A stretch of 64,000 nt of DNA from Macrostomum lignano (Eukaryota): the NCBI GenBank assembly GCA_002269645.1, contig NIVC01002406.1, forward strand, positions 113,398-177,397. Reading direction: 5' to 3'. The notes below the pieces were generated by a model that was given only the letters and a program-made list of their open reading frames with translations, was not told the DNA's origin and did not search any database. Position numbers and translations under genes: made by a program. Every line of letters begins with the position of its first letter. Within the stretch, counting starts at the first letter, position 1. Positions 3,001 through 47,585 of the stretch are shown in pieces.

Positions 3001-6000
3001 TATAAGCTTTCATTTTAAATGTAATATAGCAAGGTTTCAACACAACAACAACTTTTTTTAGCTACAGACATCTTGTAGTATCAAAAATTAACATCGGTGA
3101 AATGATTGAATTTGAATTTTTTCATCGCTAATTATCGTTTAATACCGCCAGATGATTAAAAACACTTTTGCATGATAAAGTTCAACCCAAAAATTATCTT
3201 TATTCACAGATAAAAGTGTCCTATTATTTTCAATATGGCAGTAACAATAGTAAATGTTCGGAAAATTGTTAAAATTTTTGCTCCTCCTAGAATTTGCGAA
3301 CGACCCTGGGAACTAAAACTGAAAAACCGGTCATCCCCCGCCCAGGATGGAATTCTTGTATTTCTTAAGTCAAACGGAATTATGCGATTTTTTTATGGTG
3401 CGCAAAATATTTTTTATTGGTCACATTTTTTATTTTGGTACTTAGCACGTGGCAAAATGGTAAAAACAAGTTTTTTAATGGCTTAGCTACTGCCTAATGA
3501 AAAATAACGAAAAATGCATTCTAAGAAAATGTAGTGATTTGAATTTTCGTCCAAATACGTATGTCAAGAGAATGTTACGAGTTTCTACTTTTTATAGAAT
3601 TTTGTGCCTTATTTAGTTTTTACTTTTTATTCTTTTTTTCTTCGTGATCTTAGCTAGTAGGATTATCTTTTGCAAAATTTAATATCTCAAGCGCACTTTT
3701 GCATATATTAAGAATTAGCAATTTTGTCTGAAATTCTGCGACGCATTTTTCCGGATTTTTTGACGCAAAATCGCATTTTTTCGCGCAATCTGGGTTTTTT
3801 TTTCGCCAGAGATAAGGTGCGAAATCGCACCTTGTGCCAAATTTCAAGGTGCGATTTTAAGGCTCAGAGTGCAATTTCTCTTGAGTCTTGTTTAGAATGT
3901 GGGGGTTTCACGAGAGATATTCAGACAGACATTCGAAACGATCGTCTGTAACTTTAAACAAAATTGACCCGCTTCAACCATCTTTTTGGCAAATACTTAC
4001 GCAAGTGTTGGGCGTCGAATAAGCTTTAATTTATTAACTGAAGTAAAAATCCTTCTGACATGCATTGATTTAAAAATTGCTTAGCAACACTAGCTCTGAT
4101 TAGAAATCGCTTTACTGTTGACTAAAATTGTTTTGATCGTAGCAGCCTAAAAGCAGATACTGGATTTAAAAATGCTTCGATTTACTCTATACGCATGTCT
4201 CAGCTTTAAAATGACACCTCAGGCGTCGCAAAAGACAGCTTTGATGCTGAGATATTCGACACTAAACATGCATTGCTTTGCGCAATCTCACATTCAGAAA
4301 TTTCACTGATTTTTTGTCGATATTTGTGCAGTTGCCATGTCCTTGTTTTTCATCAGAATCTTGTCAAATTCTAGTCATGTCTATACGCATGTCTCAGCTT
4401 TAAAATGACACCTCAGGCGTCGCAAAAGACAGCTTTGATGCTGAGATATTCGACACTAAACATGCATTGCTTTGCGCAATCTCACATTCAGAAATTTCAC
4501 TGATTTTTTGTCGATATTTGTGCAGTTGCCGTGTCCTTGTTTTTCATCAGAAACTTGTCAAATTCTAGTCATGTCCAGTTTAAACCTGGACTTCTCTTAA
4601 ACTGTCTTAAGTATTTGATTTTTAATGATTCCTGCCTTTATATTGCATAGATTGTACCTGAGTCAGTGAGTCTGTGAGTGTACATTTGTACATATGGCAA
4701 CCAATCATGACTTTTTCACCGCTTTGCGGTTCAAATAAATATACGAGTGTACGAGAAACATGTTCCAACTGTTATTGAGAGAAATTGACGTCGCGTTTAT
4801 TAACAGTCAGTGGCAATTAATATGAAGCAAATAGTTTATTGTTATGTTTTTACTTTTTTTTGCGTGGCAATTCTGCTATCCAAATCGGAATGAGGTAAGC
4901 GGTGGGAATAAAATAAAAAGGAAGAATTTTTTCTACTGTTGTTGCAACCCAATAGCTATATGTACTTCAAACTTTTTAGATTGAACAGGCGATTTCTAAT
5001 GTACTGCTAAGCTTTCCAATCCCTACGGACTACAGTAGCAGTTCTTAACTTTTTTTCTGTCTTGACTTCTAGACTCGGAATTCGGAACAACCTAAGGAGC
5101 CGCATGAAAATATTTAATTGGATAAAGATATTTTCTAAAAACAGCTCAAGTCGTGACACATCTTCTTCTCACCTCAGTCCATCAACTGCTGCTCCTTCTG
5201 AGACCAAAGCGATCGTGAAAGTAAAACAGATCAGTTTAGATCCCATGGCCATGAATACAACCATTTCAATTGTGAACCTGCTTCGCTTACTCGAGCACTA
5301 GCCTTCCATTTGATGCCATTAGCTCACTTAACTCTGAAATAGTTCAAGGACGGTTCCAAATGTTGAGATCTGACGTAGAAGCAGTCCAATTTGTGGAAAT
5401 TTATCAACTGGACTCCATGAATCACTCCAATGAAAGGCGGCGAATAGCTGCAGAATGCGTAAACAAGTTTAAGTGAGTCACAAAAACCCCATTTACTGTA
5501 ACTACATACACTTGTACGTTAGCAAGGCTCCATGCGATGGTTAATAAATGGAGAAGCAGACAAGCATCTGAACAAATATTGAATAAAAATCAGTGAAGTT
5601 TCCGAATGTGAGTTTCCCAGTGAAAAATGATTTATGGATTCCACGTGGGTTCCATGTGGCCATGTGGAATTTAAATGTTTCTTTTATTTTTGCAAATTAA
5701 TGAATTAAAGATTACATAATGGTATGCAAAGTATTTTTTATGCATTAATTTTCTATTTTTACTATCCTATTGTAGATGTGGATTTTACAAGGAATTCATT
5801 AGAAATACGCGTATATTGATTCAACATGGAATCCACTTCGATAAAAATACTGAGATATACTACATTCAGGTGTTTTTATAAAATTAATTTAATAAATTAT
5901 TATATTTATGTGATTTTAAGTAAAACTTAATAACTTTAAGCTAAATTATTATCGAAAAATTAGACACTGTTTGTTAAAATAGACAAAATAGAAGTGGACA

Positions 6001-6653
6001 GTAAAAAATGTTTCGTGCTTTTTAAAATTAAATTTATTTTATTTTTATTCGTCAATGTCTTGGTTGGTTCAAGGCCTTGAAAGATAAATTGCCTTGTTTA
6101 TGGCTATTTAAGCACCTTATAAATTTTAGTAGGCCTAACCTATAGGCAATAAGCCCCCTACTTATAAGGCCATGGTCTCCTCTAAGAAATCAGATAAATC
6201 AGTATTTTTTCCTAGATAGGCCTACTTTTGGTAAAATCCATGATAAAATTATTTATCCAATTTCTAGGAATCCCATGGCCATGCCCATAGTTTAGATACT
6301 CATTTTTAACTTCAATAGGCCTATAGAAGCTCATAATTTCCTCTTAGTCCTACCTACCTATCTGTTGGTCCCTGGACATTTCGGTGACAGGACGTTTCGG
6401 TGACAGCCTTTTCGGTGACAATTTAGGACGATTCGGTGAAAAATTTAGACGATTCGGTGACACGTTTTAAAAATGGAAGTTAATTTTGTCTGTAAGATAA
6501 TATAAACTCATGAACAAGACTTAATACTCAAAACTCGTCAGATTTTATTGCTTTGCGTTGATTTCGTAACTGACTTTGTTATATCTTTACACTTAAATAA
6601 AGGGTCATCTGCATTTCTAGATAAAGGTCAGTCGGCTGAGGCGACACGTCAAA

Positions 6654-6915
6654 GAGGCTTTTCATATTACCAATTCCAGAATCTGAATCGGTTCGGATCT
6701 TCCACGAAAAACAGCAGTATAACTATTTAATTCTGTTGAATGTTTGACTGCCTTAACAACCTCACTTAGCAAAATTTTTTACTTTCTTCTTGGCGATTGT
6801 CATTCAATAATAAAAACTTTATAGCACGTATCTCCCTCTAGTTATGGAGACAAAAAGTTATACTTTACAAATTGGTTTTGGTTCTGGAACCAGAACAAGC
6901 AATATGAAAAGGCCC
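6654..6915. mobile_element. Nest level 5: PIF/Harbinger-like MITE (262 bp), copy 1
   Basis: Imperfect TIRs gaggcttttcatat / atatgaaaaggccc and 3-bp TSD aaa/aaa. Closely similar to the copy at 29522-29783. Confidence 0.75.
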
Positions 6916-7249
6916 AAAGTCGCTTATTTTACACACTATAGCAGCATCATTTTTGCGACACTATCTGGATATATACCTGTGTTCAAGGCAATTCGTGTTA
7001 AAAATGTACATGTAGCCATGAGTCGCCTGGTCGATCTACTGTATTGATGCAAACAAAAGTTGTGGTTGTAGTTTGTTACTCTACTATCAGGGCTATGGAG
7101 AGGGGGCTGGGACATTCCATGCTTTATCCCCCTGCACCGCGACCCCACTTTAATTTGTTGACCTGTTATGATGGAAATCAATAATTTCTGCATGTTTTAC
7201 GGCGACAAAAAATAGCGCCTGCGGCACCAATTGAAATTGTGCCTGCGGC

Positions 7250-7372
7250 GCTGAAATAAGTGCAGCTACAGCGCTAAAATAAGTGCAGCTGCGGCGCTAA
7301 AATAAGTGCAGCTGCGGCGCTAAAATAAGTGCAGCTACAGCGCTAAAATAAGTGCAGCTGCGGCGCTAAAAT
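7250..7372. repeat. 24-bp minisatellite inside the MULE (gcgctaaaataagtgcagct-)
   Basis: About 5 tandem units visible directly. Confidence 0.85.
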
Positions 7373-8040
7373 AATCGCTGGCAACATCGATTCTAAAAAA
7401 AAATGTTGAAAATAATAATTGCTGACCATATTGACCAGGAAAGTCAAAGGAAAGACGGGGAAAGGACGACGTGAGGCCACATTAAGTTTTTAAATTGCAT
7501 AGTTTGCTTTTCAGAACTTGCTTTAAACGTTTGTTGCTATGCTACGTAAATAGGCAATTCCAGTATTTAATCTTTCGTCATTGTTAGATGGTTGATTAGC
7601 ACCTTTGATGGTTCAGTGTTGCAAAACAGTAAAGCTCGTTAAGTGAACCAATTGGGCTTAGTGGATCGAATTTTGATATCTACATGTACGAGTATTTAAT
7701 TACTAACAATGCTAATTCTGGAATGCCAAGCACCAATGATTTGGTTACGCGATAATTGCTACCATGCTAAAGCAAAATCATTGCTAGCAGAGAAGCATTG
7801 CTCGTACGGTGATATAATGTTTGTTTTTGACACGACACGACATTAGGGTTAGCAAAGCAGAACAACGGATTGCGTATGAAATATGAATGCGGATGAATTT
7901 ATAAAGACTCGTGGTATCTGAGGCGCCAATACGACTATATAACTTCTAGCAAACTCGAGCGATAGTTCTTCGAATTCTAGACGCATGCATATTCACAGCT
8001 CTGCTGGTTCTTACCTTTAATCAGTCAAAATAGTTATTTC

Positions 8041-11000
8041 ATGGACGATTACTGCCCAAAATGCAGCCATGCTGTTAGCGGCCGCCAACATGCACTTAAC
8101 TGTGATAGATGCAAGTTTTGGTATCATCGACTCTGTTTAACAGGTAAGATTCTAAACTTCGCTATTTTGCCCAACTTTTTCGTGTTTAACAGAAAAAAGG
8201 TATTCCATCATAAATTCTACATGTAACTTCGCCGAATTTCACTTTCCCATAATTTCATTTGCTCGTAATATCACTCCCAATTGCATCTCAAAGCAATTGC
8301 ATACACGGATGCGTGTAGCCAGTAAGTACATGTACGCTCGTAGCTACAGTCCATGCCACGCCTTTTTGTTATCATTTTAGGGCGCGCCAGCATCTCTATG
8401 GCTAAATATCGTGAGTTACAACGCCGCAGCTCCTTTAACTGGTGCTGCCCAAACTGCAGTTTAGCGGGCAATGAAGCTGCAGCGGATGAGGAAAGTGAGC
8501 AGGTTGCTACAGCCAGCGAATCTGAGGATGAGGCTGCAGCGGATGAGGAAAGTGAGCAGGTTGCTACAGCCAGCGAATCTGAGGATGAAGCTGCAGCGGA
8601 TGAGGAAAGTGAGCAGGTTGCTACAGCCAGCGAATCTGAGGATGAAGCTGCAGCGGATGAGGAAAGTGAGCAGGTTGCTACAGCCAGCGAATCTGAGGAT
8701 GAAGCTGCAGCGGATGAGGAAAGTGAGCAGGTTGCTACAGCCAGCGAATCTGAGGATGAAGCTGCAGCGGATGAGGAAAGTGAGCAGGTTGCTACAGCCA
8801 GCGAATCTGAGGATGAAGCTGCAGCGGATGAGGAGGTTGTAGCTGATGATGGCGGGATGATTCACGATCTCTATGAATCAGTTAGTGACCCAGAACCCAG
8901 GCCAATAGTTGAGCGAGGTCAAGAGTTAGAGACTTTTGAAGTCATGCAAGACGGAGGCAGCCGAGGGAACGTTCTTGTAATATCGTCGAATGGGTACTCC
9001 TATGGCCTTCATCGTCGGCGTGGTGCTCGTGAATATTATCGTTGCACTCAGCGCAGTCGTCATACCCCTTGTTGTGCTACTCTAATTCGCAGTGCCGGTG
9101 AAGAGTTCAAGCATGGGAAAAGCGGGCACAGCCATGCACCAACCCTTGGTGCTTCTGCTACTCGAAAGATTTATCGAGACGTAAAAGTTGCTGCCTCAAC
9201 GGATGTCTTTAAGTCTGCGGCACAGCTTACAGATGATAGACTACTGCGCGAACTCACTTCCTCCACGGCAGCGAACTTGCCGAATCCAACAAATCTAATT
9301 AGAGCTGCAAACCGGTTTCGCGAAAGAGGACGGCCAGAGGAGCCTAAGGATTTAAACTTCCAACTGCAGTTGGAAGCCTTGCCCAATGGATTTCTCAGAA
9401 GTGATGTCCAGGTTGGAGGAAGACGACACTTAGTATTTGCTACTAATCATCAATTGACACTACTGAGTAGTGCCCACGAGTTGTTCATGGACGGTACGTT
9501 TTCAATTGTCCGACGGCCATTTGTGCAACTTTACTCGATTCATGGCTTTTTCCGTGCTGAAGGACATCTGAAACAGGTGAGCATGCAATAGGTCAATATT
9601 ACGATCGTACTAAGCTCTAATATACGGAATTCGAATCCCTGGAACTATATTTCTGTATGAATCCTAATGAATCACACAACATCACGTCTTCTCTTCACTC
9701 TTCTCTCTTGTCTCTGTTCTCTTTTCGCCTCTTTCATCTCTCCCCTCTCTTCCCTCTCCCTCTCTCCCTCTCTTCCCTCTCTCCCTCTCTCCCCTCTCTC
9801 CCTCTCTCTCCACTCTCTCCCCTTTCTCCCCCCTCTTTCCTCTCTTCTCTCTCTCTACCTTTCTCCCCTCTCTTCCCTCTCCCTCTCTCCCTCTCTTCCC
9901 TCTCTCCCTCTCTCCCCTCTTTCCTCTCTCTTCTCTCCCTTCTCTCCCCTTTCTTCTTCTCTCCCCTCTCTCCCTTTTCTTCTTCTCTCCCCTCTCTCCC
10001 TTTTCTCCCCTCTCTCTCCTCCCCTCTCACCTTTCTCCCCTCTCTCTCCTCCCCTCTCACCTTTCTCCCCTCTCTCCCCTCTTTCCTCTCTCTTCTCTCC
10101 CTCTCTCCCTTCTCTCCTCTCTTCTTCTCTTCCCTCTCTCCCCTCTCTCCCTCTCTCCCCTCTCTCCCTCTCTCCCCTCTTTCCTCTCTCTCTTTTCTCC
10201 CCTCTCTCCCGCCCTCTCCTCTTGCTTCTCTCTTCTCTCTATAAGGGAAAGAGAGACAGGCGGATGTTGTACATGATTGCATGCTATATACATGTGTATG
10301 TACTGTATCCATGTATTGCAATTACCGCCGTTTTAAACTAATGGCAGGTCCCATTAGCGTTTGTCCTAATGTCTGGAAGAAAAAAGCGCGACTACAAGGC
10401 AATCCTGCGTGAAATTCGGAGACTAGTTCCTAACATGGATCCGAAGAGTTTTGTCCTGGATTTCGAGCACTCTGTGTGGAAGGCGATCCGGAGGGTCTTC
10501 CCAAATGCTAGTGTTCGTGGCTGCAATTTTCACTGGACTCAAGCAGTTTGGCGCAAAGTCCAGAACATAGGACTTCAACAGTCCTATCAAGAAGATGAAG
10601 GCACGCAAAAGTTCGTCCGGAAAATTATGGCCCTGCCTTATTTGCCCGCGGACACTATTGTGGCAGCCTTTGACGAGCTTCGGACAGAAAATGCCGTTGA
10701 AGCTGACGAACGTCTAGTTGAGCTCTGCAATTACGTTAGCGGCACCTGGCTAACGGAGGGCCATCAATGGACTCCAGGAGACATTTCTGTATTTGGCCAG
10801 CCAATACGAACCAACAACGACTTAGAAGGCTGGCACTACCGCCTTAATCGCAAAGCGGGACGACGGAACCTGCACTTCTACCTGCTGGTACAACTTATTT
10901 ATGATGAGGCTGCCTTAGTACCTCTTCAATCTAATCTGCTGTCTAGAGGTATGCTTTCTCGTGAACAGCGGAAGACGTATAGAACTGTTCAGTCCCGTCT

Positions 11001-11088
11001 GTTCCGATATTGGGCAGAGTTCGATTCTGGCAACCGAACGGTACGACAGCTTCTTCGAGCCTGTGGTCGGCTGTGTAATCCGAAGTGA
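8041..11088 (+). CDS. PHD-FLYWCH-MULE transposase, 3 exons, predicted 679 aa
   Basis: Exons 8041-8143, 8381-9576 and 10348-11088 join in frame at GT-AG sites. PHD: CPKC..CDRC..WYHRLC..WCCPNC. FLYWCH-like: YYRC...C...HSH. MULE motifs: FMDGTF, VLDFE, GCNFH, RTNNDLEGWH. No internal stops. Confidence 0.9.
8473..8833 (+). repeat. 57-bp coding tandem repeat (EAAADEESEQVATASESED x6)
   Basis: Six near-identical units in frame within transposase exon 2. Confidence 0.95.
9680..10240. repeat. CT-rich polypyrimidine low-complexity tract in transposase intron 2
   Basis: Almost exclusively c/t; produces spurious S/L/P and R/E/G ORFs. Confidence 0.95.
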
Positions 11089-14064
11089 TCGAACCCTCTC
11101 AGGACAACGGCCTGCAGCATGTGCTGGATGACGGCCACAGGCACAGAGAGGAATCTGTTGGACGGCCGCCTGTGCTAATGCAATAGCTATCTCTCTGTTA
11201 TAGCGCGAACTTAGAAAAGTTGTTTACTACATGTATAACGATCTTTCAATTCACTCAATCATGTATTGTTAATCATTTCGAATAGGATTTTTCTTCCATG
11301 CTATAGTTTTATCGCCAATTGACAATTATTTTACTTTCAGCTTTTCGTTGTAAATTTTCTAAGACCATTAATTCATGGCAATTTTTCTGTTGTAAATATA
11401 AAACCCATTATTAAAATCCACTAATCACAAATCGCTATGCCATGCATATTTTTCATGTTTTAATATTCGATATTTGTGGAAATTGAGTCGCAATACTAAT
11501 AAATGCTCTAAATATTAAATAAATTATGTTATTTTCTTCCTTAAGCTTGAATATAAGTGTACTATACATGTATGACAGTACAAATGTCTGATCTTACGCA
11601 ACAATCAACCATGCAACCATGCAATATGCACTGTAGCTACTTATATTCATATGAATGTGAACAATAATTAACTAACAATAACTGTTAAAATATACTCGTA
11701 AAAATGTTATGCTTTTTGACATAAATTTGCTCGACTTTGCAAAAATCAATAGGCCAGGGTAGGCCTATTGCCAAAATTCTTACTTTCATAAAATAAATTT
11801 AAGTGTTATAAATTTAAGTGTAGTGATATAACAAAGCCAGTTACGAAATCAACGCAAAGCAATAAAACCTGACGAGTTTTGAGTATTAAGTCTTGTTCAT
11901 GAGTTTATTATCTTACAGACAAAATTAACTTCCATTTTTAAAACGTGTCACCGAATCGTCTAAATTTTTCACCGAATCGTCCTAAATTGTCACCGAAAAG
12001 GCTGTCACCGAAACGTCCTGTCACCGAAATGTCCAGGGACCCTATCTGTTTATATGTATGCTTATTAGGCCTATTTTAAGCCGTAACTATCAAGTTATAT
12101 ATCTTTCTATTTTAATTAAGGTTAGGACTAGCTTGACTTTGTGAATTGAGTAGTCAATCTAGCTATTCAGTTAAATCTATTAAATAATGATTTTCTGCAA
12201 GAAAGCCTGTTAGCATCTTTTGGACTTGTTGCATTTTTAAAAACAATGTTATAGATCTAATAAATAGGCCTAAATTCTTTGCAATTATACTTGCAACTTG
12301 CTTTTGGCATAACTAGCCTAGTAGCTAAGGTTATTATGAATAAATAATGATTATTGTAAATTTGATCAGATATAGGGCTAGGCCAAGTCTAGAATTTAAT
12401 AGCCATGGGGCATAATGCCTATTTAGACTTAGGCCTCATGTTTTATCATACTAGCAAATAAATGGAACTTGCATTGTTTTGCCTAAAAACTATATGGTCT
12501 AGAACCAATTTTAAAATAAAAAAATTAAATCTAAAAACATATATAATAATAATTTCTATACTCATTATTTTATTGGTATTTCTATTTATTGACTTAGGCC
12601 TTGTTACTTTTGAAATAGTCTTTATTAAGTATTCATCCTTAAAAGTATACTAATATAATCTATCAATCTTAATTGGCAACAACTATTTTTTGTTTCATTT
12701 ATGCCTAACATCACGTGGCTTATCCTGAAACTTGGGTGTCACCTTGGTCTTGCCTTTGAAGAAGCATGCAAAGCTACTTGGAATTTGAATTTAATATCCA
12801 GAATGCTACCTTTTGTGAAGCTGTGGTAAGTTTTAGTTACAAACTGATTTTTTTCTGTCATCAAAATGTACATTTATCTGTTATCCACAGATACTAATAA
12901 AATTCTGTAATTTAACTCATTTCTTTTCTAAGGTTTCTCACCTGACCTGAAGAAGCAGCATTCTGGCGATTGGCAGCAGCTTGTTTCTGAGTGTTCTAAT
13001 TCTGGTGCATTATAATATTTTTAATTAATGCTATTGACAATGTCAGTTTCAAATTATATATTGTATCATATGCGCAACTCTTAAAGGTATCAATATCTAC
13101 ATCAGTGTGTTTATTCTTTGTGTGCCAGTGACTTACTACTGTACATAAATACACCTTACTTATTGAGACATCCTTTTTGAATATATTTTTGTGCAGAAAT
13201 ATTTTTTGGCTTTAGTGTTTTTATCTGTGTTTCAGTTTTTTATATGGTATTGAGATCTGGGGTGTGTATGAAATTTTGAGATCTGGTATTATTTTGAGAT
13301 TTAAGATGCAATAATTTATTAGGGCAACCAGTATAATGGCTGCTACTCAATGACAATGTGGATTCTATGTGAAATACATAATTACTTCCATGTGGATCTT
13401 CCATGTGGAATCCATATCTTGATTCCACATGGATGGACAGAGACAAATGAACATATGGATTTCATATGAAAAATCCACATGGAATCCATATCATTTTTTT
13501 CACTGGGTTGAGCAAAGCAATGTTTAGTGTCGAATATCTCAGCATCAAAGCTGTCTTTTGCAATGCCTGAGGTGTCATTTTAAAGCTGAGACATGCGTAT
13601 AGACATGACTAGAATTTGACAAGATTCTGATGAAAAACAAGGACATGGCAACTGCACAAATATCGACAAAAAATCAGTGAAATTTCTGAATGTGAGATTG
13701 CGCAAAGCAATGCATGTTTAGTGTCGAATATCTCAGCATCAAAGCTGTCTTTTGCGACGCCTGAAGTGTCATTTTAAAGCTGAGACATGCATATAGAGTA
13801 AATCGAAGCATTTTTAAATCCAGTATCTGCTTTTAGGCTGCTACGATCAAAACAATTTTAGTCAACAGTAAAGCAATTTCTAATCAGAGCTAGTGTTGCT
13901 AAGCAATTTTTAAATCAATGCATGTCAGAAGGATTTTTACTTCAGTTAATAAATTAAAGCTTATTCGACGCCCAACACTTGCGTAAGTATTTGCCAAAAA
14001 GATGGTTGAAGTGGGTCAATTTTGTTTGAAGTTACAGACAATCATTTTGAATGTCTGTCTGAAT

Positions 14065-17000
14065 GGGTCTCCCTAAAACACGCCCCGGGGTGTGTATAAA
14101 AGCTGGCACTGGCACATTGGACACATTGGACACCCCTTTTTATAACAAAATTAGATATGAAAATGCAGAATAAACTTGCGGAGTTACTTTAAATAATTTT
14201 TAAAAAATGATAATATTAGAAATGACATCCTTGCTTTCGTGATAGATGATTTGTTAAATATTCTTTGTATTATCGTTTTTTGTACATGTTTAATTTGGCA
14301 TTCGATTTTTTAAAATAATCGCACATGTATGCAAAAACTGCAGCTTGCAATGCTATTACACTGTGATTTTACTACCCGAAGGTTCTGTACTACAGGCGTA
14401 CCGATTTAATGCTAAATATGCCTGATATATAAAATGATCAAACTAATAGTCAGAACTCAATTTTCCATAAAATGATGAAGCATTCTGCTCTTATCAAAAA
14501 ACCACAACTTATTTTGTTAGGATTACTTCATGAAGAACGAACTTTGGATATTCCAAGTTGCAAGTATTTCTATATTAAAAAAGTTAATACATTGGCAGAT
14601 TATTTGATGAAAAAATTGCACCCAAAAAGTTTTTTTTTACTTTGTAAGATGATGATTAAATTGATAATTTCCAAGCTTCTTCTTTTATTATTTCAATTAC
14701 TTTTTCTATGATTTCAACCAACAAAAAAGGAATAGCTACTCAGTGAAAGTTCAAATTACAGTCTCTTCTTTATATACAATCCTTGTAAGAAAACCTTTTA
14801 TTATGAATAATTTGCCAAGTCATGATATTTAAGAAATTGTGCTAATCATTTAAATTATGAGTTAAAAAATTCAAGCATTTAAGTAAAAAATCTACCTTAC
14901 AGACCAAGAAGTCTTTTTACTGAAAAGTTATGTGACACTTTGAATAAACAACATATAAACCATCTTCACATAACATTTATTGTCATTTATTTCAGGCCTA
15001 AATCCTTTAGCACATAAATATTCTGCACGTATGTTGCAGGGTATACTTCCTTCTTCTAAAATCCTACAAATGCCACAAAGTTTTAATAGGCAGATTTATT
15101 AGTATTGTTTATATTAATATTTCTATATTTATGAGAAGTGTCCCAATAAGAACAAGTTCCCAATCAGTAAAACACTATTTTTTAATTCTAATGTCCAAAA
15201 TTATGGCATTCTAAGGGACCAAGTGATAGGTTTTAAGCTACTATTAGCACCTGCATGATTTATTTATTTAATACCTACACATTCCTTAATGTCTATAGTT
15301 CGCCTAATTGCCTAATTGCTAACCCTAATTCTAGCCTTCTTGGCTTACAATTTTGCGTCTTCACAGCACATTATTCAATTCAAGCCCTACTAATTTTATT
15401 AATTTTATTAGCCTCTCTTAATTTTATAAAATAATAATTTTCTTTAGTGTAACTGCTCCAAAAATTTAAGTGGTGTGCCGAAACACCACTTGCACCATTA
15501 CAGCCCTGTCTATAATTTTTTTGTGCTAATTGGTTGACCACTTTCAATAATTTTCTTGGGTCAAGAGTGTGATATATGCATATTGCAGCATGAATTTTTT
15601 AAAGAATCCCTAATTTTATACAAGGAATCATACATATTTATAGAAAGTTAGCTCTTAGAGTAGAGATAAAGTACATAAGACTATTAATAGCAACTTTTCA
15701 TACAATTGCTTATGGTAATGACTTCTATTGTTATAAAGTTACAAATAAATAAAAAGTTACATTGCATTAAAACTGTACTTTATGAGTTGTAAGCCTTTCA
15801 ACTCAGAGTGCACTTCAATTGCTTTAATATACATTGCTAGATATTATTTAGCATTTCTTTGTTATTTATCATTTAACTCATTGCATTATTTAATTGCTAA
15901 TTTCATTTGCTCAGCTGCAATATTTATAACTTTTTTATTAATGCCAATGTTTGTTATACTTTTTCTCCCCATTTTTAGTGTTTGTGGTATTCTTTTGTCA
16001 AATTTTAATTTTTCAGCTGTATCTATCTTTACAAAAAATTGTACCTGTAAACTTATGGTTTTTTGCTTACAATGGTACTGTACTAAATTATATTTATTTC
16101 CTTGTTAGATTCTCTAAATTGAAAAAGTAATGCACTGCTTTATTATTATCCATATTGAATATTAAGGAGTTAGTATTCCTTCCTTGAAAAAGATTCTAGA
16201 GTTGGATTCTATTTGATAAGAGAATAAATAATTTATTGAGTTTTAATGTTTTTAAAACATTAATTAATTGCATTTTGATGGACACCATAACTTAAAAAAT
16301 TATTCATTTTTTTATTTAAGACACGGGGGATTTTAAAAGTCCATATTAACAACAAATCAAACATTAACATTATGGGAGAGAGAGAGAGAGAGAAGGATTA
16401 GATTCACTTTCACCATTGCTGTTGATTTATGGAAAGGCAGTAAACAAGCCAGAGCAGCTGCAAATTGTCAAATATGCCATGTCCGGCTATAAAATTCTGC
16501 AACTAGTCTGCTGCTCACTTTTTCCAACGTTTATTGAGAACAAGAAACGGCATTTAATGTTTCTATGTTTTCTGTAAGTGCACCAACTAGGTAAATGAAA
16601 ATGACGTACCGAAAGTAGTTCGACAATAAAGCAAGATAAGAAATGAATTTAAATGTAGAATAAAACTTGTTGATACTACCAATCTCATGGTTGTTAAAAG
16701 TATATAAAAAAGTGCAATTATAAATAAATATTTACATTTTCATTCGAAAGCCAAAGTAGATTTATTTAAGCAAAACAACGATCAAAACTCGATTTTTGTT
16801 AACATAAGGGGTGTCCAATGTGCCAATGGTGCCCTGCTTTTATACAGACCCACACGCCCCGCACTGCCCTGCAGCGCTACACATTAAAACAAATTGGACT
16901 ATAACTAAAGACACTTCAGAATGCGTTTTCTGTTAAGCTTCAAGTTTTTATTAAATTTAGTTTTTTTACTTTGAAATATAAAATTCGGTGAACAATAAGT

Positions 17001-17192
17001 GATATTAATAATAATATTATAATTTAATAATGAAAACGAGAATATAAAAAATAATAATATTTAAAAAAATAAATAAAGATATTTATTCCATTACTATTTT
17101 AACTTTTCCTTGCAATCAAATACTGCATTGACAAAAATGTTATAATGTGTAGCAGTTCGGGGCCCGGTGCGGGGCGTGTTTTAGGGAGCCTT
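14065..17192. mobile_element. Nest level 3b: Mutator-type MITE (~354 bp net)
   Basis: TIR core ctccctaaaacacgccccgcac...gctacacatta is restored once the inner insert is removed. 9-bp TSD tgtctgaat (14056-14064, 17193-17201). The outermost bases are mismatched (gggt vs aagg). Confidence 0.8.
14088..16851. mobile_element. Nest level 4b: non-autonomous Mutator-type element (2764 bp) inserted in the left TIR of level 3b
   Basis: ~55-bp TIRs gggt(g/c)tgtataaaagc...ggcacattggacacccct. 10-bp TSD acacgccccg (14078-14087, 16852-16861). No transposase ORF seen. Confidence 0.85.
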
Positions 17193-18745
17193 TGTCTGAA
17201 TATCTCTCGTGAAACCCTCACATTGCTCACATTTCAGACAACTGGGAATGTATATTTTAATATCTTACATAAGGCTATAGCTATAGGCTATATCGCCTAT
17301 ATGACTTAGTAGGATTTAAAGAGTTATTTTGTTTCATATTTTAAGGCAGTGCATAAAAAATAGCTTAAGCATGGTTAAGCCTTTAAAGAAAAATGGTTAT
17401 AAGACCGCACCTAAACCGCACCTACTTTTTTAATTTCAGGGTGCGATTTTAAAATTTAGGGTGCATACGCACACTCTGCGCACAAAAAAAAACCCTGCGC
17501 GCAATCGCATAACGCGTTGTGATTTTTCTGCAAGAATTCCATCCAGGTCGGGCCCCGCTGCTCAACGTCAATCTCGTCAATCTCGTCCACGTTTGTTGAT
17601 CATATTAATAAATAAATATTTAGTCTGTAAGCTGAGATAAAGTTATTCAATATTTTAATCAAGTTTTGTCTATCGTCTATGATTGAAAGGGACTAAGACA
17701 AGTAATTATTTTCTGAAATTTTATATGCTTGAAACTGAAACTACTATATAGTCATATTAAATATAGCATGCATGATGCTGCATAGGCCTAATCATTGATG
17801 TATAGATTTGATGCGATTCGAATTGCCCCCCTATCTGCTATTTATAGGCCTAATTTAAGCCTGAGTTTTATTTTGTAGGTATAGATTGATTAAGTTCAAG
17901 GCATACTTTTAAATTTAGTATTGCAATGGATATTCAAGCAATGCAAAACAGACTTATATGTCTAGGCTTAGTCTAAAATAGATTGATAGGCCTATAGTAG
18001 TAAGGCTCATCTTCCACAAATAAAGTGTCAAATGATTTGATTTGTATTACTTTAGCTACACTACAGTACAGTACAGGGTAGGCCCTGGCCTAGGCCTAGC
18101 TGAAATAAGAAATTTGATAAATTATAAGGCTTAGGCCTATCACAATTAGAAATATTACATTTTATTTTAAGCCTTTTTGACTTAAGCATAGGCCTTGGTC
18201 TTGGGCCTACAAATAGTTAAAAGCTACATAGTTATACATTACATAGGTCTATATCTATATTTTAGTCCAATTCATATTCTAGTATTAACCTAGCTAAGAT
18301 AAAAGAAAACTAAGATAAGATAAAAGGGTCAAGCCAGTCTTTAAAATACAACAAATATTTTCATTTTAAGCAAACTTAGATTAAACATATAAAAGAAAAT
18401 GCAAAATTTACATTCTTAGCAATTATTTATATTAATCTAATGTTATTTATTGTTAATTTTAAAACAGCAAAAAGTTTATCATTAACTTTCTAGACTAAGC
18501 CTATACAATTTTTCCATTACTTCACTTAAAAGTTAATTTACATTACAATTTTTATGCACAGCACAGCATATATTTATTCATCAAAATTAGTAGGCCCTAT
18601 GCCAAAAAATTGGCATCAATTTGTGCATCAAAATTTGTAGACCTATGCCTACAAAAATTGCATGAATTTGTATGCCAACTTTGAAAGGGGTCATTTGTGT
18701 GCTAGAAATTTTTTGGCATATATATGACCTTCTGGAGTCTGGCAC

Positions 18746-19043
18746 CATACATGCGCTACAGTCGGCCGAGTTGGCCGATCTGGCCAACTAATTTGGCGGC
18801 CAACCAAGGTAAGTCGCAAAAAGGCTTACCCCAAAGAATACACACGTAGTTCTAATTAGATAATGTGGTATTTAGCCCTTATAAGACAGTCATAGTTACT
18901 CTTGCCATTTACCCAAAATTGTATTAATTTTGCTTTAGGGTTTCTTTCATAGGTAAGTTGCATTTTTGGCCTAAAACTATTTCGCATTTTTTGTTAAAAC
19001 TAAGTCGCATGGCTGACCAAATTTTGGAAGTTGCACATATATA
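18746..19043 (+). mobile_element. hAT MITE family catacatgcgc, copy 1 (older)
   Basis: Homologous to 22235-22525. TSD tctggcac/tctggtac (1 mismatch); right TIR is decayed. Confidence 0.8.
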
Positions 19044-21889: not shown

Positions 21890-23135
21890 AGGATTGCTTG
21901 CAGGAAAATAGCTTGTCAAAGTTTGCTTGCAGGAAGATTGCTTATCAAAGTTTGCTTGTCAAAGTATCTTCATGCCAAAATTTGCTAGTATGAAGTTAGT
22001 TTGCTTGCTTGCAAAAGATTGCTTGCAGGAAGTTTGCTCACCAAAAGATACTTATAGAAGTTTATTAGCCATACTTTTGTGCTATTTTGCTTGACAAAGT
22101 TTGCATTATTATTCAATTGTAAAGATAACTATATGGAGTTACAACAGCATAATCATAATCCTCAACTATGATTATAAGTGTATTTAACTGCAAATTACTT
22201 AACTGACCACATCAAATTTTTTTTCTGTTATGCACATACATGCGCAACAGTCGGCCGAGTCGGCCGATCCGGCCGACTGATTTGGCAGCCAACCAAGGAA
22301 GTCGCAAAAATGCCCACCCAAAAAAATACCCCCGTAGTAGTACTAAGTAGCTGACGAGGCATTTTTGCCTGATAAGACAGTCATAGTTACTAGTCCCAAA
22401 GTTGCGTTAATTTTGCTTTGGGGTTTTTTTTACATGTAAGTCGCATTTTTGGCCAAAAACTACGTCGCATTTTTGTTAAAACTAAGTCGCACGGCCGACC
22501 GAATTTTGGACGTTGCGCATGTATGGTTATGCAATACTTTTAAATTGCTTAGTGCAATTTAAGTAACATAAGCATAACAAATGCACATGAAAAGTTAAAA
22601 GCTACATGAAGTAGAAATAAAAAAAATATAATGAATAGTTTTTGAAAATCATATTATACTTCTAATTAACATTTTAGTACATTTCTAAGAGGTTGAAATA
22701 ACCTAAGTATTTAAAAATGATTTGAATATTTTGTCTACTTTAATATACTATTGTGGCAAAGTCATAAGCTAATAAAATATGGAAAAGTATAGTGTTACTC
22801 AAAGTGAATATAATTAAAATGCTGCTGTAAACTAAAATTGTGTGTCCTAAATTGTGTGTTGCAAATATCCTGCAAGCAAAATTTGGCAAGCAAAGTACAA
22901 TAAGCAATTGTCATGCAGGCACATTTTGGCAAGCAAAGTATAGTAAGCAATCGTCATGCAGGCACATTTTGGCAAGCAAATTTTAGCCAGCAGATTTTAG
23001 CAAGCAATGTTTAGCAAGCAGACTTCAGCAAGCCAACTTTGGCAAGCAAAATTTGTCAACCAAACTTCAACAAGCTCAGTAAGCAAATTGTTGCAAGCAA
23101 ACTTTAATAAACAAACTTTGGCAAGCAAAATTTGT
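21890..23135. repeat. Inverted clusters of ttgcttg / caagcaa short repeats, possibly a degenerate TIR element
   Basis: tttgcttg motifs at ~21890-22105 and complementary caagcaaa motifs at ~22870-23130. Ends and TSD not resolved. Confidence 0.4.
22235..22525 (+). mobile_element. hAT MITE family catacatgcgc, copy 2
   Basis: 14-bp TIR catacatgcgcaac/gttgcgcatgtatg. Perfect 8-bp TSD gttatgca (22227-22234, 22526-22533). Confidence 0.9.
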
Positions 23136-24018: not shown

Positions 24019-24707
24019 CCTATACTAAATCTCTAAGGTTTGTTTGTTTGTCTGTCTGTAACGCTCTAGAGATCGCAATTCTTGACCGATTTTGATCGCG
24101 TTTTCGCCAAAAGATTCAAAATTGTCTGGAAAGAAGACAGTTAAAATTTCTTTAATCTGCTTCAATGCTAAAGGGATTAAATATTCGAAAAACGGTTTTA
24201 AATGGGCAAATTCAATGTATTTTTTATCAAACTGCTCGCAGCGATAGAATTCACAGCCAATTTTAATGATTGTGCCAGAGTAACTGATCAGAAAGCTCAT
24301 ACATGTGCAACCTCCAAAATTCGGTCAGCTGTGCGACTTAGTTTTAACAAAAATGCGACGTAGTTTTTGGCCAAAAATGCGACTTACATATAACAAAACC
24401 CGAAAGCAAAATTAACGCAACTTTGGGTAAACGGCAGGAGTAACTATAACTGTTTTATTAAGCTAAAATGCCTCATCAGCTACTTAGTACTACTACTTTT
24501 GTTTTGTTTTTTTTGGGTGGGCATTTTTGCGACTTCCTTGGTTGGCCGCCAAATCGGTCGGCCGGATTGGCCGACTCCGCCAACTGTTGCGCATGTATGA
24601 GAAAACTCACTGGGCCCCACTGGCGAGATAACAAACTCTATTTAAATTTCGCAACCATTAAATGGGTGAATATAAAAAGTACTCTCGATGCTGGCAGACA
24701 GCTCTAG
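24019..24707 (+). mobile_element. Non-autonomous Helitron-like element, interrupted by hAT MITE copy 3 and followed by a partial tandem copy (~24712-24860)
   Basis: 5' tatactaa..gtttgtttgtttgtctgtctgt..ccgattttgatc layout; 3' gctg..cagc hairpin followed by CTAG|T. About 150 bp recur in direct orientation just downstream. Confidence 0.5.
24298..24599 (-). mobile_element. hAT MITE family catacatgcgc, copy 3 (reverse orientation)
   Basis: Reverse-complement homology to copy 2. TSD agaaagct/agaaaact (1 mismatch). Confidence 0.85.
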
Positions 24708-26439: not shown

Positions 26440-27380
26440 ACCATCAATTAAAGACTTGCTAAGATATCTAAGCTCATCGGGGAATAGCTGAGTTGTCAAG
26501 GCTTATAAGGGGATTGCTGAGTTATCAAGGCTTATAAGGGGATTGCTGAATTCTTGGGAGAGGGGAGTTGGGTTGTTGGGATGTCATGGCTAATTACTGC
26601 AGTGGGAGAATTGCATAGATGTCGAGGCTGGAGTTTAATTGCTGCGATGTCGAGGCTTAATGTGGTTATTCCTGAGATGTCAAGGCTTACTGGGGAATTG
26701 CTGAGATCTCAAGACTTACTGGGGGAATTGCTGATATGCCAAGGCTAACTGGGGAAATTACTGAGATGTCAAGGCTTACTGGGGGAATTGCTGAGATGTC
26801 AAGGCTTACTGGGGGAATTGCTGAGATGTTAAGGCTTACTGGGGAAATGCTGAGATCTCAAGACTTACTGGGAAAAGTTTTGAGATCTCAGAGCTTACGG
26901 GGGAAATTGCTAACATCTCAAGGCTTACTGGGGGAATTACTAAGATGTCAAGGCTTACTGGGGGAATTACTGGGATGTCAAGGCTTACTGGGGGAATTGC
27001 TGATATGTCAAGTCTAACTGGGGGAATTACTGAGATGTCAAGGCTTACTGGGGGAATTGCTGAGATGTCAAGGCTTACTGGGGGAATTGCTGAGATCTAA
27101 AGGCTTACTTGGATCTCGAGGCTTACTGGGGAAATGCTGAGATCTCAAGACTTACTGGGAGAATTTTTGAGATCTCAGAGCTTACGGGGGGAAATGATGA
27201 GATCTCAAGGCTTACTGGGGGAATTGCTGATATGTCAAGGCTAACTTGGGGAATTGCTGAGATGTCAAGGCTTACTGGGGGAATTGCTGAGATCTAAAGG
27301 CTTACTGGGATCTCAAGGCTTACTGGGGGAATTTCTGAGATCTCAAGGCTTACTGGGGGAATTGCTGGGATGTCAAGGCT
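26440..27380. repeat. 30-bp minisatellite (gctgagatgtcaaggcttactgggggaatt)
   Basis: Roughly 25-30 units, well conserved from ~26670 and degenerate at the left end. Confidence 0.95.
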
Positions 27381-29177: not shown

Positions 29178-30282
29178 CAGTGTTGGGCACTTCCGTTACC
29201 GAGTAACTTGCAAATGGTAACGCAAGTTACTTTTTCGTAAAGCGTTTCTTACGCAAGTTACTTTTTTATTTTAGTAACGGAGTAACGGTAAGTTACTCAA
29301 ATTTCGGAAGTCCGTTACAGTTACTTTGCAACAATCGCAATATTTAAATTAAAAACTGAAATGCTTAGCTAGTACGCCGGTTGTCACATGTTTTTGCATT
29401 TTTCATTCATAAATTCAAAATTAAGTGAATAGTATCATATGGTATTGCGCTTAATTAATGAAGAAATACTTGAAACATGTATTACTTTGTTAATATTGGT
29501 AAAATATTTTCGCCTTTCATTGAGGCTTTTCATATTACCAATTCCAGAATCAGAATCGGTTCGGATCTTCCAAGAAAAACAGCAGTATAACTATTTAATT
29601 CTGTTGAATGTTTGACTGCCTTAACAACCTCACTTAGCACAATTTTTCACTTTCTTCTTAGCGATTTTCATTCAATAATAAAAACTTTATAGCACGTATC
29701 TCCCTCTGGTTATGGAGACAAAAAGTTATACTTCACAAATTGGTTCTGATTCTGGAACCAGAACTAGCTATATGAAAAGGCCCATTTTCGTTACTAAAAA
29801 TTTTTAAGTTTGATTCAAACAAACAACCAAAGAAAGAAATTCATCTGTAGCCTCCACAAGTCCCTCCACTGGCACTGCAGTACACTACACCATTTTATAC
29901 AGTTCTATTTATTTTACTCTATTGAATTATTGATATTCGTATGTTTTATCATTTATAATTTTAATTATTGATTGCCATTGCCCATTGGTCCTTCTACTTG
30001 CCTCACATCGTGTCGCCAATTCCTGTCTCTGTCTGTTAATCGGTTAATCCCAATGCCCAATGGCAAATTTCGGTAACAACAATGTGAAAAAAATGTGCAA
30101 TGTGAAAAAAGCAGAAAATTTTGTTAATAACATGGGTAACGGAAGTGAGTAACGGACAGTAACTTAAAAGTTACCAGGTTTTTGTCTAAAGTTACTAGGC
30201 TAACGTAAGTTACTTTTTAAAAATTGGTAACTTAAGTTACAGTAACGCAAGTTACTTTTTTTGAGTAACTTGCCCAACACTG
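29178..30282. mobile_element. Non-autonomous hAT element (1105 bp)
   Basis: 12-bp TIR cagtgttgggca/tgcccaacactg, many subterminal gtaac/gttac motifs, and 8-bp TSD ctcctctc (29170-29177, 30283-30290). Confidence 0.92.
29522..29783. mobile_element. PIF/Harbinger-like MITE, copy 2, nested in the hAT element
   Basis: Same sequence family as 6654-6915; 3-bp TSD att/att. Confidence 0.8.
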
Positions 30283-32309: not shown

Positions 32310-32604
32310 TCATATTGTTAACTTTCATAGACACTGGTACTGACTTGCCAAGAAATTGATTATGTCATAACTGATTCATGTGACTTTTTACTCTACCTGA
32401 CTTGGTGTGAGTGTTGAATTATATAAGTAGTACAAATTCACTGATAACTTCAATGAGAGCTAGCCTAGAGCTGAACAGACCAGACTGCTAATGCAGCAAC
32501 CTGGGTTTGAATCTAAGTAGTTTAAAAGTAGTACTGTAAAATTTTTTATTAAAAGCTTTTAATAAAGGACTAAATAAAAACACTTAGATTACTGCACTGT
32601 ATAA

Positions 32605-33725
32605 GACAAAGATTATTGCTATTAATAAACCAAGGATTAATGCACTTGATTAATCAAGGATTATTGCTAATAATAAACCAAGGATGACTGCACTCGATAA
32701 GCCAAGAATCATTACTATCAATAAACCTAGGATTACTGCACTTGATAAGCCAAGGATTATTGCTATTAATAAACCAAGGATTAATGCACTTGAATAATCA
32801 AGGATTATTGCTATTAATAAAGCAAGGTTTACTGCACTTGATTAATCAAGGATTATTGCTATTAATAAACCAAGGATTATTGCACTCGAGAAGCCAAGGG
32901 TTATTGCTATTAATAAACCAACGATTTATGCACTTGATTAATCACGGATTATTGCTATTAATAAACCAAGGATTACTGCACTCAATAAGCCAAAGATTAT
33001 TGCTATTAATTAACCAAGGATTAATGCACTTGAATAATCAAGGATTATTGCTATTATTAAAGCAAGGATTACTGCACTTGATTAATCAAGGATTATTGCT
33101 ATTAATAAACCAAGGATTACTACACTAGATAAGCCAAATATTATTGCTATTAATTAACCAAGGATTAATGCACTTGAATAATCAAGGATTATTGCTATTA
33201 TTAAAGCAAGGATTACTGCACTTGATTAATCAAGGATTATTGCTATTAATAAACCAAGGATTACTACACTAGATAAGCCAAATATTATTGCTATTAATAA
33301 ACAAAGGATTACTGCACTCGATAAGCCAAGGATTATTGGTATTAATAAACCAAGGATTAATGCACTTGATTAATCAAGGATTATTGCTATTAATAAACCA
33401 AGCATTACTGCTCTTGATAAGCCAAGGATTATTGCTATTAATAAACCAAGGATTATTGCACTCGATAAGCCAAGGATTATTGCTATTAATAAACCAAGGA
33501 TTACTTCACTCGATAAGCCAAGGATTATTGGTCTTAATAAACCAAGGATTACTGCACTCAATAAGCCAAGGATTATTGGTCTTAATAAACCAAGGATTAC
33601 TGCACTCGATAAGTCAAGGATTATTGCTATTAATAAACCAAGGATTACTGCACTCGATAAGCCAGGGATTATTGGTCTTAATAAACCAAGGATTACTTCA
33701 CTCGATAGCCAAAGATTACTGCACT
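32605..33725. repeat. 24-bp satellite with alternating A/B monomers (48-bp and 144-bp higher-order periods)
   Basis: A = caaggattattgctattaataaac. B variants = caaggatta(a/c)tgcact(t/c)ga..taa(t/g)c. Confidence 0.95.
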
Positions 33726-33739
33726 TGATAAGCTTGGCT

Positions 33740-45277: not shown

Positions 45278-47009
45278 GAGTCCTTATTCACTAGCTACAT
45301 AGTCTCATGGGTATTATGCGTCTGTATCATGTTTGCCTTTTTGTTTTTTTATATGTTATAATAAATCATTTCTCTCTTTGAATGCCCATTTAATAAATAC
45401 CTGCGTTCGTTTTCCTATAACATATCGTCCATGCACTTAAATCGAAAAAATGCAATATGTTTCTGTTTGTAGGCATGAGTTAGTTGGTTGATGTTCCTGG
45501 AACTTCTTGGTTCTCGATTCTGACTCTGTCCAGCTTGTAAAGTAACTGATAATCTCTCATTATGGCAGCAGTTTAAAGTATGCTTTGCAATTTTCTTCTA
45601 TCTGTAAAACTAATTTGTTAATTTGACCCTGAACAGATTCTTCAATTTTGGCACTATATTATAACGTTCACTTTTCGGACTTGGCTAGCAACGTGTTTAT
45701 ACTGCTTTGACATTTCGAATTTCGTCTTATATGCTGTAAGTAGTACTATCCTTTGATACTTCGTTTAACGTTTTAGCTCTTGAAATATTTGCTTTATTTG
45801 TTCAATGCCTACTGTTTATAAAGGCCTGTAAACTAGCTGTAATAGCTTTGTAATCTGTGCGTACACTTGAACTCTTACCTGTCCTACATTAATATTATTT
45901 AATATTTTCTGCTTGCGAGGCTTCGATCTGCAATTCAGATACACGAGTCAGTTATTCAGTGTGGCCTACTACTCAACCAAAAAATGAAGCAAGTTTATCG
46001 GGGCATTGTTGCACTGTCTGTTTTTCTCAGTTCCCTTGCACGCTTAGATACAATATTTGATACCTGTTATCTATTTCCATCTTTGTTATGCTTTTAGTAT
46101 TATTTTTACTCTTATTATAAATAGCTGTTTGTGTTCGCGATATTTCACCGCTTAGTAACGATATGGCGACAGTAGCTACACATAGGCATTTAACACATGT
46201 AACAAGCTGAGTTGCACAATAAAATGCGTGCGATAGAAGCCTCGCTGTTGACAAGGTGAGCGGTGTAATATTCGGCATTCTTATTAACTTATTTTAGTCT
46301 TGTAAGAGAGAGAGCCCTAATGTACTTGCCCTGTGAATTGCGCTTTTATTTATTTTTTCCAGCACCAAAGGCAATGTCATCGTTGTCTTTGTCAAACTGT
46401 TAGCCTATCCAGTTTGATGTTGTAAGTAAAATATGTGAGAAAGTCTTGTGCTTGTTCATTTTATTATCAAGCCTTGTTTAGCTCTGCGTTTCAACTATTA
46501 TCGCCATTTTCAACATTGGAATTAGTATCTGGCTCTGCTTTTCTCTTGGCTTTAATTGTATATTTGTTTTAATTCTCTTATTCATATTTCATTCGCCTGC
46601 TTGTGCTGCGCGTTTTGCAAGCGAACAGTTTTTTTCTACACTTGATTTAATACAAACCGCGTCACCGTTACATCTCCGAGCGTATTCTGTGTTTACCGTT
46701 TCCCCTGAACCCAGCTTATTCAGCTCTGAAAAGTTGCCCGTCCTATCTCTTGGTTCTGCCTGGCAACCTTAGCAGCAAGTAGCTTAACCCCGTTATTACA
46801 TTTATCCTTGCACATACAAATATATGCAAATAAACACGTTCTGCTTGCGGTCGTTTCCGAACAATTCTAATGCTTAACTTCACAGTCGTTTCTGTTTAAC
46901 TTCAATTAGCAAATATTTGTCGTTCATCTACAAAATTGAAATCCCAATTGGCTTCCAGTTATTCCCTTTATGGTTTGTAGCAGTTTAGACGATTGATAAA
47001 AGTAGCACA

Positions 47010-47571: not shown

Positions 47572-47585
47572 TCTTATTGTTCCAG

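Follow-up and report, generated by a model that had tools for sequence, protein, structure and literature searches.

An apparently intact Mutator-like transposon of Macrostomum lignano with a predicted transposase carrying an N-terminal, Pygopus-like PHD finger

A DNA transposon of the Mutator-like element (MULE) type, apparently intact and autonomous, occupies positions 6367–12041 of a 64,000-nucleotide (nt) stretch of the Macrostomum lignano genome (GenBank assembly GCA_002269645.1, contig NIVC01002406.1, positions 113,398–177,397; hereafter the window). Its predicted 679-aa transposase combines, in this order, a PHD finger, an acidic repeat, a FLYWCH domain and a MULE catalytic core. We give a probability of roughly 0.5 to the reading as a whole, in which an intact autonomous MULE of a marine-invertebrate family moves by a cut-and-paste mechanism like that of Muta1 and its PHD finger docks onto a histone tail. 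All the structural features listed for the element in an original prediction, made from the sequence alone, were reproduced.

The element is bounded by terminal inverted repeats (TIRs) of 232 nt that match at 97.4% overall (GGTCCCTGGACATTTCGGTGACA), the left one at 6367–6598 on the plus strand and the right one at 11812–12041 on the minus strand. The outer arms (6367–6502 and 11906–12041, 136 nt) are 100% complementary and the inner arms (6502–6598 and 11812–11908, 97 nt) are 96% complementary. A perfect 9-bp target-site duplication (TSD), CTATCTGTT, directly abuts both ends (6358–6366 and 12042–12050), and a 9/9 match of this kind is expected by chance with a probability of about 4e-6. Five subterminal copies of TTCGGTGAMA (written out, TTCGGTGACA) lie in each TIR, at 6380–6462 on the left and at 11946–12028 on the right, and are candidate binding sites for the FLYWCH domain of the transposase. 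These ten copies are all that the window contains, against 0.16 expected. The near-identical TIRs and perfect TSD of the original prediction are thus borne out.

The predicted spliced open reading frame (ORF) on the plus strand joins 8041–8143, 8381–9576 and 10348–11088 into 2040 nt with one stop, at the very end. GT and AG bound each of the two introns, and none of the neighbouring junctions gives an open frame. Exon 1 (8041–8143) opens with an ATG that comes after an in-frame stop, runs from Met1 as far as base 1 of codon 35, and contributes the PHD ligands C5, C8, C21, C24, H29 and C32 together with W27. Its donor GT is at 8144, and intron 1 (8144–8380, 237 nt) splits the finger. Exon 2 (8381–9576) encodes the remainder of the finger (Y44, W55, C57 and C60), the acidic repeat, the FLYWCH domain (8965–9135) and the start of the MULE domain with D405 (9490–9492). 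After intron 2 (9577–10347, 771 nt, phase 0), exon 3 (10348–11088) supplies D471 (10459–10461), the C492xxH495 motif (10522–10533), W574 and E593 (10825–10827), and ends in the stop codon at 11086–11088. The acidic repeat is encoded by a tandem array of a 57-bp unit (8471–8834, 6.4 copies, 99% matches), whose 19-aa product, AAADEESEQVATASESEDE, starts at residues 67, 86, 105, 124, 143 and 162. Intron 2 consists mostly of a CT-rich microsatellite of about 550 bp (9690–10240) with units TCTCTCCCC and TCTCTTC.

The splice between exons 1 and 2 is very likely real, judging from the reconstructed protein and its homologues. The finger is complete only after splicing, with six of its ligands in exon 1 and C57 and C60 in exon 2, and the intron 1 junction is the only one that gives both an open frame and a complete C4HC3 finger. 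The second junction restores LKQ/VPL (the slash marks the junction), whose K432, Q433 and P435 do not vary among the homologues of an 18-sequence alignment. In the homologues themselves, at 33–44% identity, a single uninterrupted frame encodes this PHD together with FLYWCH and MULE, and the protein begins 3–5 residues ahead of Cys1.

A UniRef gene model from M. lignano (P0001) bears on the same point. It is 100% identical to the 679-aa protein over the aligned part and may derive from the same locus; it has no PHD exon, passes over the DGTF block and has its end in a different frame. The missing PHD, and an intron that cuts through the finger, are what could be expected if the protein began in exon 2 and exon 1, an ORF arisen by chance or an exon lately captured from the host, lay outside the transposase mRNA. 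We hold this to be extremely improbable, given that two of the zinc ligands lie in exon 2, that this finger stands in frame with FLYWCH–MULE in homologues from four other phyla, and that the two halves of the finger are adjacent in one homologous contig (L001), where a 1-nt frameshift is all that parts them. P0001, for its part, is visibly mis-spliced: because it lacks both the PHD and the DGTF block and has an out-of-frame end, the spliced 679-aa model predicted here is the better annotation. A second UniRef entry from M. lignano (P0004) is a diverged, broken copy fused to unrelated sequence resembling a reverse transcriptase.

The Pfam scan of the protein places the MULE domain (PF10551) at residues 403–497 with 42.9 bits (cut-off 27.6) and FLYWCH (PF04500) at residues 230–286 with 26.0 bits (cut-off 23.6), the latter with a Tyr in place of the eponymous Trp (YYRC). 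The PHD, at residues 5–60, reaches 18.3 bits when the whole protein is scanned and 24.6 bits with the N-terminus alone (cut-off 24). All residues of the catalytic signature are there: D405 (in DGTF), D471 (in DFE), C492-x2-H495 and E593 (in NNDLEG). C492-x2-H495 falls 21 residues past D471, and W574 stands 19 residues ahead of E593. In MULEs a (C/D)x2H motif is located 15–45 residues beyond the second Asp, and a Trp precedes the Glu, at a spacing of 18 in Muta1 (PMC5499845). By this spacing only, W574 appears to be the equivalent of the Muta1 Trp. The D405, D471, C492xxH495, W574 and E593 columns are invariant or nearly so in the 18-sequence alignment. The stop-free order of domains and the full set of catalytic residues described in the original prediction therefore stand.

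Several features together place the element in the Mutator superfamily: a MULE domain with an Asp-Asp-Glu (DDE) triad, a (C/D)x2H motif and Trp, a TSD whose 9 bp fall within the 8–10 bp range, and long TIRs. By domain architecture (FLYWCH and MULE, repeat-bearing TIRs, 9-bp TSD) it is probably Phantom-like, as the original prediction had proposed. Phantom transposases bear a FLYWCH zinc finger at the N-terminus and, after it, the MULE domain (PMC3169594). The Phantom group, including Muta1 of Aedes aegypti, its biochemically characterised member, shares with the window element the FLYWCH domain and MULE DDE core, an 8–10-bp TSD and TIRs with subterminal tandem repeats, as well as the DDE triad, the (C/D)x2H motif and a Trp about 18–19 residues before the Glu (PMC3169594; PMC5499845; PMC6446971). 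The window protein differs in that an additional PHD finger and a linker of acidic repeats come ahead of FLYWCH; a published table lists the zinc fingers of Phantom as ‘None or FLYWCH or SWIM’, with no PHD (PMC6446971). Neither single-sequence nor profile searches with the window protein returned insect Phantom/Muta proteins.

To place the protein among its relatives, we searched with the acidic repeat removed; the full 679-aa query was swamped by repeat words and gave only 4 matches. The repeat-removed search returned 62 relatives, nine of which cover 94–100% of the query including the finger. Named sources among the nine are Actinostola (sea anemone), Palaemon (shrimp), Apostichopus (sea cucumber) and Tegillarca (bivalve), and two Mytilus proteins with lower query coverage also carry the PHD finger. 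The relatives at 33–44% identity come from cnidarians, molluscs, a crustacean and an echinoderm and have Pfam PHD, FLYWCH and MULE domains, and one relative is labelled ‘PHD-type domain-containing protein’ in UniRef. A profile search extended the range to corals, oysters and a nemertean, and not to insects. Where the window protein has its 57-bp-unit repeat, the homologues have a variable acidic linker.

The sea-anemone and sea-cucumber loci are flanked by TIRs with subterminal repeats of their own, which argues that these are transposons and not domesticated genes; no 9-bp TSDs were evident at the boundaries chosen for these TIRs. Since the same N-terminal PHD with invariant ligands recurs in such distant relatives, the PHD–FLYWCH–MULE architecture is, on comparison of these proteins, old and widespread, and the finger a selected part of the transposase and not a recent capture by the flatworm. 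On L001, the contig that encodes the relative P0003, the first half of a PHD lies at about 5900–6010, directly upstream of the called gene and in another frame. The break there is the 1-nt frameshift, with no intron, in a contig of about 3x coverage, and gene callers miss the finger; some of the other ‘PHD-less’ relatives in the match list may be frameshift artefacts of the same kind. In a further relative, P0031 from an ENA contig, an OTU-like cysteine protease domain (Pfam PF02338, 23.1 bits) stands between a PHD remnant and FLYWCH. OTU domains have been reported earlier in some MULE transposases, which P0031 echoes.

Within the finger, C5, C8, C21, C24, H29, C32, C57, C60, W27 and Y44 are invariant among 10–11 aligned sequences, and Q16, L19, R30, T34 and W55 are at least 90% conserved in these alignments. 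Across 139 fingers of the transposon type, conservation is similar (V12 94%, Q16 93%, A/G18 93%, L/I19 94%, D/E22 90%, W27 98%, W55 91%); Y44, which lies outside that count, is also invariant in a 32-sequence alignment. When the finger profile was compared with all PDB sequences, the Pygo1/2 PHD came first (E 2.8e-10), with MLL1 PHD3 (E 1.6e-7) and KMT2C/D fingers also matched. An AlphaFold2 model of the finger (mean predicted local distance difference test, pLDDT, 74.9) aligned best by Foldseek with Pygo PHD structures (TM score 0.80–0.89, root-mean-square deviation 0.8–1.4 A). PF27108 (PHD_Pygo) is among the precomputed Pfam matches of the homologues, a result that concerns the homologues only and is marked ‘weak’ for two of them (P0005 and P0020).

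Profile and model together indicate a selected, folded finger of Pygopus-like type, with MLL1 PHD3 as the next closest. The original prediction had called the finger ambiguous between H3K4me0 readers of the BHC80/AIRE type and ING-type K4me3 readers. The residues it named are present: D3 and W27 stand two positions ahead of Cys1 and His29, respectively, and A18 three ahead of Cys3. Its ‘Ala where ING has Met’ corresponds to A356 of Pygo1. The ambiguity did not hold, and we rejected both an ING and a BHC80/AIRE type, as the profile and fold searches put the finger with Pygo and MLL1 PHD3.

We mapped the finger onto human Pygo1, taking residue roles from Fiedler et al. (PMC2726290). The equivalents of the Pygo1 residues that dock the H3 tail are kept (V350 = V12, A356 = A18, I357 = L19, E360 = D22, W366 = W27 and Y379 = Y44), as is that of W390. 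The shared motif is C..C...V...Q.A(L/I).C(D/E)..C..W.HR.C(.)TG......Y........W.C..C in human Pygo1/2 and Drosophila Pygo. The Pygo PHD is a reader of H3K4me2/3, with Y341 and D352 as wall and lip residues of the K4 pocket (PMC2726290), and in the window finger these methyl-state residues are replaced (Y341 = D3, D352 = G14). Thus neither the semi-aromatic K4me2 cage nor the acidic EVND loop of Pygopus is kept, and the protein around the finger is a transposase in place of a Wnt co-activator. Across the 139 transposon-type fingers, the acidic EVNDDQD loop of Pygo has given way to a conserved basic loop, xVRPRQ(E/Q). The net charge of the Cys2–Cys3 loop is about +1.2 in the family and +1 in the window protein, compared with −4 in Pygo1; the window copy reads VSGRQ where the family consensus is VRPRQ.

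When the finger profile was run with HMMER against 1.84 billion representative proteins, 4278 of them matched at E<=1e-3 and 680 at E<=1e-10. The best 150 matches are mostly short fragments; of the 32 longer ones among them, 7 have FLYWCH and 1 has MULE. Alignment with the window protein continues past the finger, into the FLYWCH region or beyond, for 27/149 top matches. In one match from the representative library (P0063), fingers of this PHD type stand four in tandem, followed by a further segment for which Pfam gave no match. We take this segment, from its motif, to resemble the start of the endonuclease of a LINE (non-LTR, that is non-long-terminal-repeat, retrotransposon). From P0063, the finger type may be shared between transposon classes.

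The steps of transposition can be proposed from Muta1, whose transposase, with FLYWCH and a DDE core, binds its own TIRs, in which 12-bp subterminal tandem repeats affect transposition, and makes double-strand breaks with hairpins on the flanks in a reaction that depends on D214, D283, E419 and W401 (PMC5499845). By analogy, the FLYWCH domain would bind the five TTCGGTGAMA subterminal repeats of each TIR. The DDE core (D405, D471 and E593, with CxxH and W574) would then excise the element through double-strand breaks, leaving hairpins on the flanking DNA, and the 3′-OH ends would be joined to the target with a 9-bp stagger. The N-terminal PHD would dock the transposase on a histone N-terminal tail, which is the weakest step of the scheme, and such docking would tether transposition to, or bias it by, chromatin state.

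The finger probably docks an N-terminal peptide tail, and the most plausible ligand is H3, as the Pygo tail-docking framework (V12, A18, L19, D22, W27 and Y44) is retained. Because the residues of the K4 pocket and the acidic loop are replaced, the preferred mark, and even the ligand, is not inferable from sequence. Chromatin guidance is a reasonable and testable hypothesis, and the nearest relatives suggest that any bias would be toward active rather than repeat chromatin.

Several points weigh against the reading as a whole. The Pfam PHD score of the full protein (18.3 bits) is marginal. The lip of the K4 pocket is unlike that of Pygo and the loop is basic, which could mean weaker binding of basic tails or another ligand. 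The PHDs of Pygo and MLL1 (PHD3) also bind proteins (BCL9 HD1 and Cyp33, respectively), and a non-histone role is therefore plausible. Finally, the MITE-like insertion described below, in the 5′ region of the element, and the deviation of its loop from the family consensus might make this copy less active than it appears.

The third of these points can be taken further. The PHD could be an adaptor or regulatory module that recruits a host cofactor, assembles the transposase, inhibits it in cis or contacts nucleic acid through the VRPRQ loop. The binding of BCL9 HD1 by the Pygo PHD (PMC2726290) and the presence of an MLL1 PHD3–Cyp33 chimera among the PDB matches fit such a role, as does the replacement of the acidic pocket loop of Pygo by a conserved basic one. 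In a Pygo crystal, moreover, the pocket held the N-terminal tail of a neighbouring PHD as a pseudoligand (PMC2726290), so such pockets accept non-histone N-termini. Set against this, the residues that dock A1, T3 and the backbone of H3 (A18, L19, D22, W27 and Y44) are the most conserved in the family, and we consider a protein–protein role rather unlikely. Docking on a histone tail is the reading we prefer. A broader proposal, that the PHD tethers this metazoan-wide MULE family to a particular histone-tail state, which would make it a natural cut-and-paste transposase guided by a chromatin mark and a one-chain analogue of RAG1 plus RAG2, and that animal Pygo-type PHD fingers and FLYWCH factors share ancestry with this transposon family, is unlikely as a joint claim. 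Such shared ancestry, by domestication or capture, might be suggested only by the position of Pygo as the closest solved relative.

The original prediction took the landing site, described as inside four other transposons, as a sign of a preference for repeat chromatin. We confirmed two enclosing TIR-bounded elements. The first (5616–13507) has 36-nt TIRs (5616–5651 and 13472–13507) and subterminal repeats CCATGTGGA. The outer one (3896–17224) is foldback-like, with TIRs of about 552 nt at 98% identity (3912–4463 and 13520–14071) that contain a 194-bp tandem duplication, and its outermost 32 nt are at 3896–3927 and 17193–17224. A further insertion at about 14066–17191, flanked by the 9-mer TGTCTGAAT and with TIRs GGGTCTCCCTAAAACACGCCCC, splits the right TIR of the outer element. 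Between the Mutator element and the first enclosing element, a search for further TIR pairs gave weak matches only (best 27 nt, 85%, E 0.008). The landing sequence is AT-rich (28–30% GC, compared with 39.5% for the window).

A PHD that directs the element to repeat-rich or silent chromatin would agree with this AT-rich setting and with the nesting inside two or more other TIR elements, and also with D3 at the position of the Asp that the original prediction linked to H3K4me0 readers. However, only one insertion is at hand, and repeats make up over half of the M. lignano genome (PMC5730564), so that a repeat target is the null expectation and says nothing about preference; the landing-site argument therefore falls away. 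The nearest solved relatives read H3K4me2/3, which are marks of active chromatin, an Asp two residues before Cys1 occurs in only 37% of the 139 transposon-type fingers, and other MULEs favour open chromatin near genes, as in maize, where Mu insertions co-localise with open-chromatin marks (PMC2774946). Steering into repeat-rich or silent chromatin is thus highly unlikely.

PHD fingers in transposases are on record. The transposase of Rehavkus, a MULE outgroup in Repbase, has one (PMC6446971), and a C-terminal PHD finger is found in MULE transposases of Ciona and C. elegans (PMC1702500; Babu et al. 2006). The window element shares with Rehavkus a PHD finger within its transposase, which is N-terminal in the window protein. 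It differs in that the DDE core of Rehavkus-1_HR aligned with the window protein at a BLASTP E of 0.37 over 12 residues only, in having FLYWCH and a canonical DGTF where Rehavkus has D-S/A-T-G-S, and in lacking a minisatellite ahead of its 3′ TIR. Downstream of the stop codon, the sole tandem repeat before the right TIR is a 15-mer in 1.9 copies (11793–11821) that runs into the TIR. With DDE cores that are not significantly similar and no such minisatellite, we rejected an identity with Rehavkus.

The Ciona and C. elegans proteins are likewise MULE transposases with a PHD finger, but theirs is C-terminal and their DNA-binding domain, with two classic zinc fingers, belongs to the insert-containing WRKY-GCM1 type, whereas the window protein has its PHD at the extreme N-terminus and FLYWCH as its DNA-binding domain. 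RAG2 and its relative RAG2L carry a PHD finger (PMC7204232), and RAG2 is listed among the K4me3-preferring fingers by Fiedler et al. (PMC2726290). RAG1/RAG2 and the RAG-like systems resemble the mechanism proposed here in DDE cut-and-paste with hairpins on the flanks and in an associated PHD finger. In RAG, the finger is on a separate subunit (RAG2, kelch and PHD) and the catalytic subunit is Transib-related; in the window protein, PHD and DDE core lie in one polypeptide of the Mutator superfamily. The novelty claimed at first is therefore weakened, as PHD–FLYWCH–MULE proteins are widespread in public protein sets and PHD-bearing MULEs were already known. For the N-terminal Pygo-type finger on FLYWCH–MULE transposases, our literature search, from which Repbase and Dfam were outside scope, found no describing paper.

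The ORF, the TSD and the outer TIRs of the copy are perfect, and its description as young is plausible, although identity between TIRs cannot serve as a clock. No other contig came up in an exact-sequence look-up with the exon 3 ORF. In the 5′ non-coding region lies a 262-bp insertion (6654–6915, plus strand) resembling a miniature inverted-repeat transposable element (MITE), which is about 95% identical to 29522–29783; the MITE-like element has TIRs of about 14 nt (GRGSCTTTTCATAT), and the two copies are flanked by 3-bp duplications (AAA at 6654–6915, ATT at 29522–29783). The same region holds a 23-bp minisatellite (7243–7374, plus strand, 5.7 copies, 91% matches), which, like the coding array at 8471–8834 and the intronic one at 9690–10240, is among the tandem arrays reported by Tandem Repeats Finder. 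A scan for sigma-70 promoters and terminators, a model not applicable to a eukaryotic element, gave background counts.

Elsewhere in the window, the insertion at 14066–17191 has a TSD of Mutator-like length and contains another TIR pair (14111–14155 and 16789–16833). A repeat of about 300 bp is present in three copies, 82–88% identical (18742–19042, 22232–22525 and 24298–24599), two of which, inverted around a 1.8-kb interval, are probably the TIRs of another transposon family. Self-BLAST ladders of the window also show four large tandem arrays (26637–27380, 32587–33731, 47008–47572 and 59905–60378). A high satellite content has been reported for M. lignano, and the arrays are consistent with it.

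Should the finger serve as a protein adaptor, or be dispensable, this would be just another well-preserved MULE. The target choice of DNA transposons is poorly understood, and Mutator elements are known to insert near gene starts and in open chromatin. To our knowledge, few cases link integration to a chromatin reader, examples being the PHD of RAG2 and the chromodomains that certain retrotransposon integrases carry. A conserved, built-in PHD of the histone-reading type across a Mutator family would offer a direct and testable handle on such insertion bias and, if the finger is functional, a possible inspiration for targeted transposase tools. As M. lignano is a model for transgenesis, an apparently intact endogenous transposase is also of practical interest in this organism.

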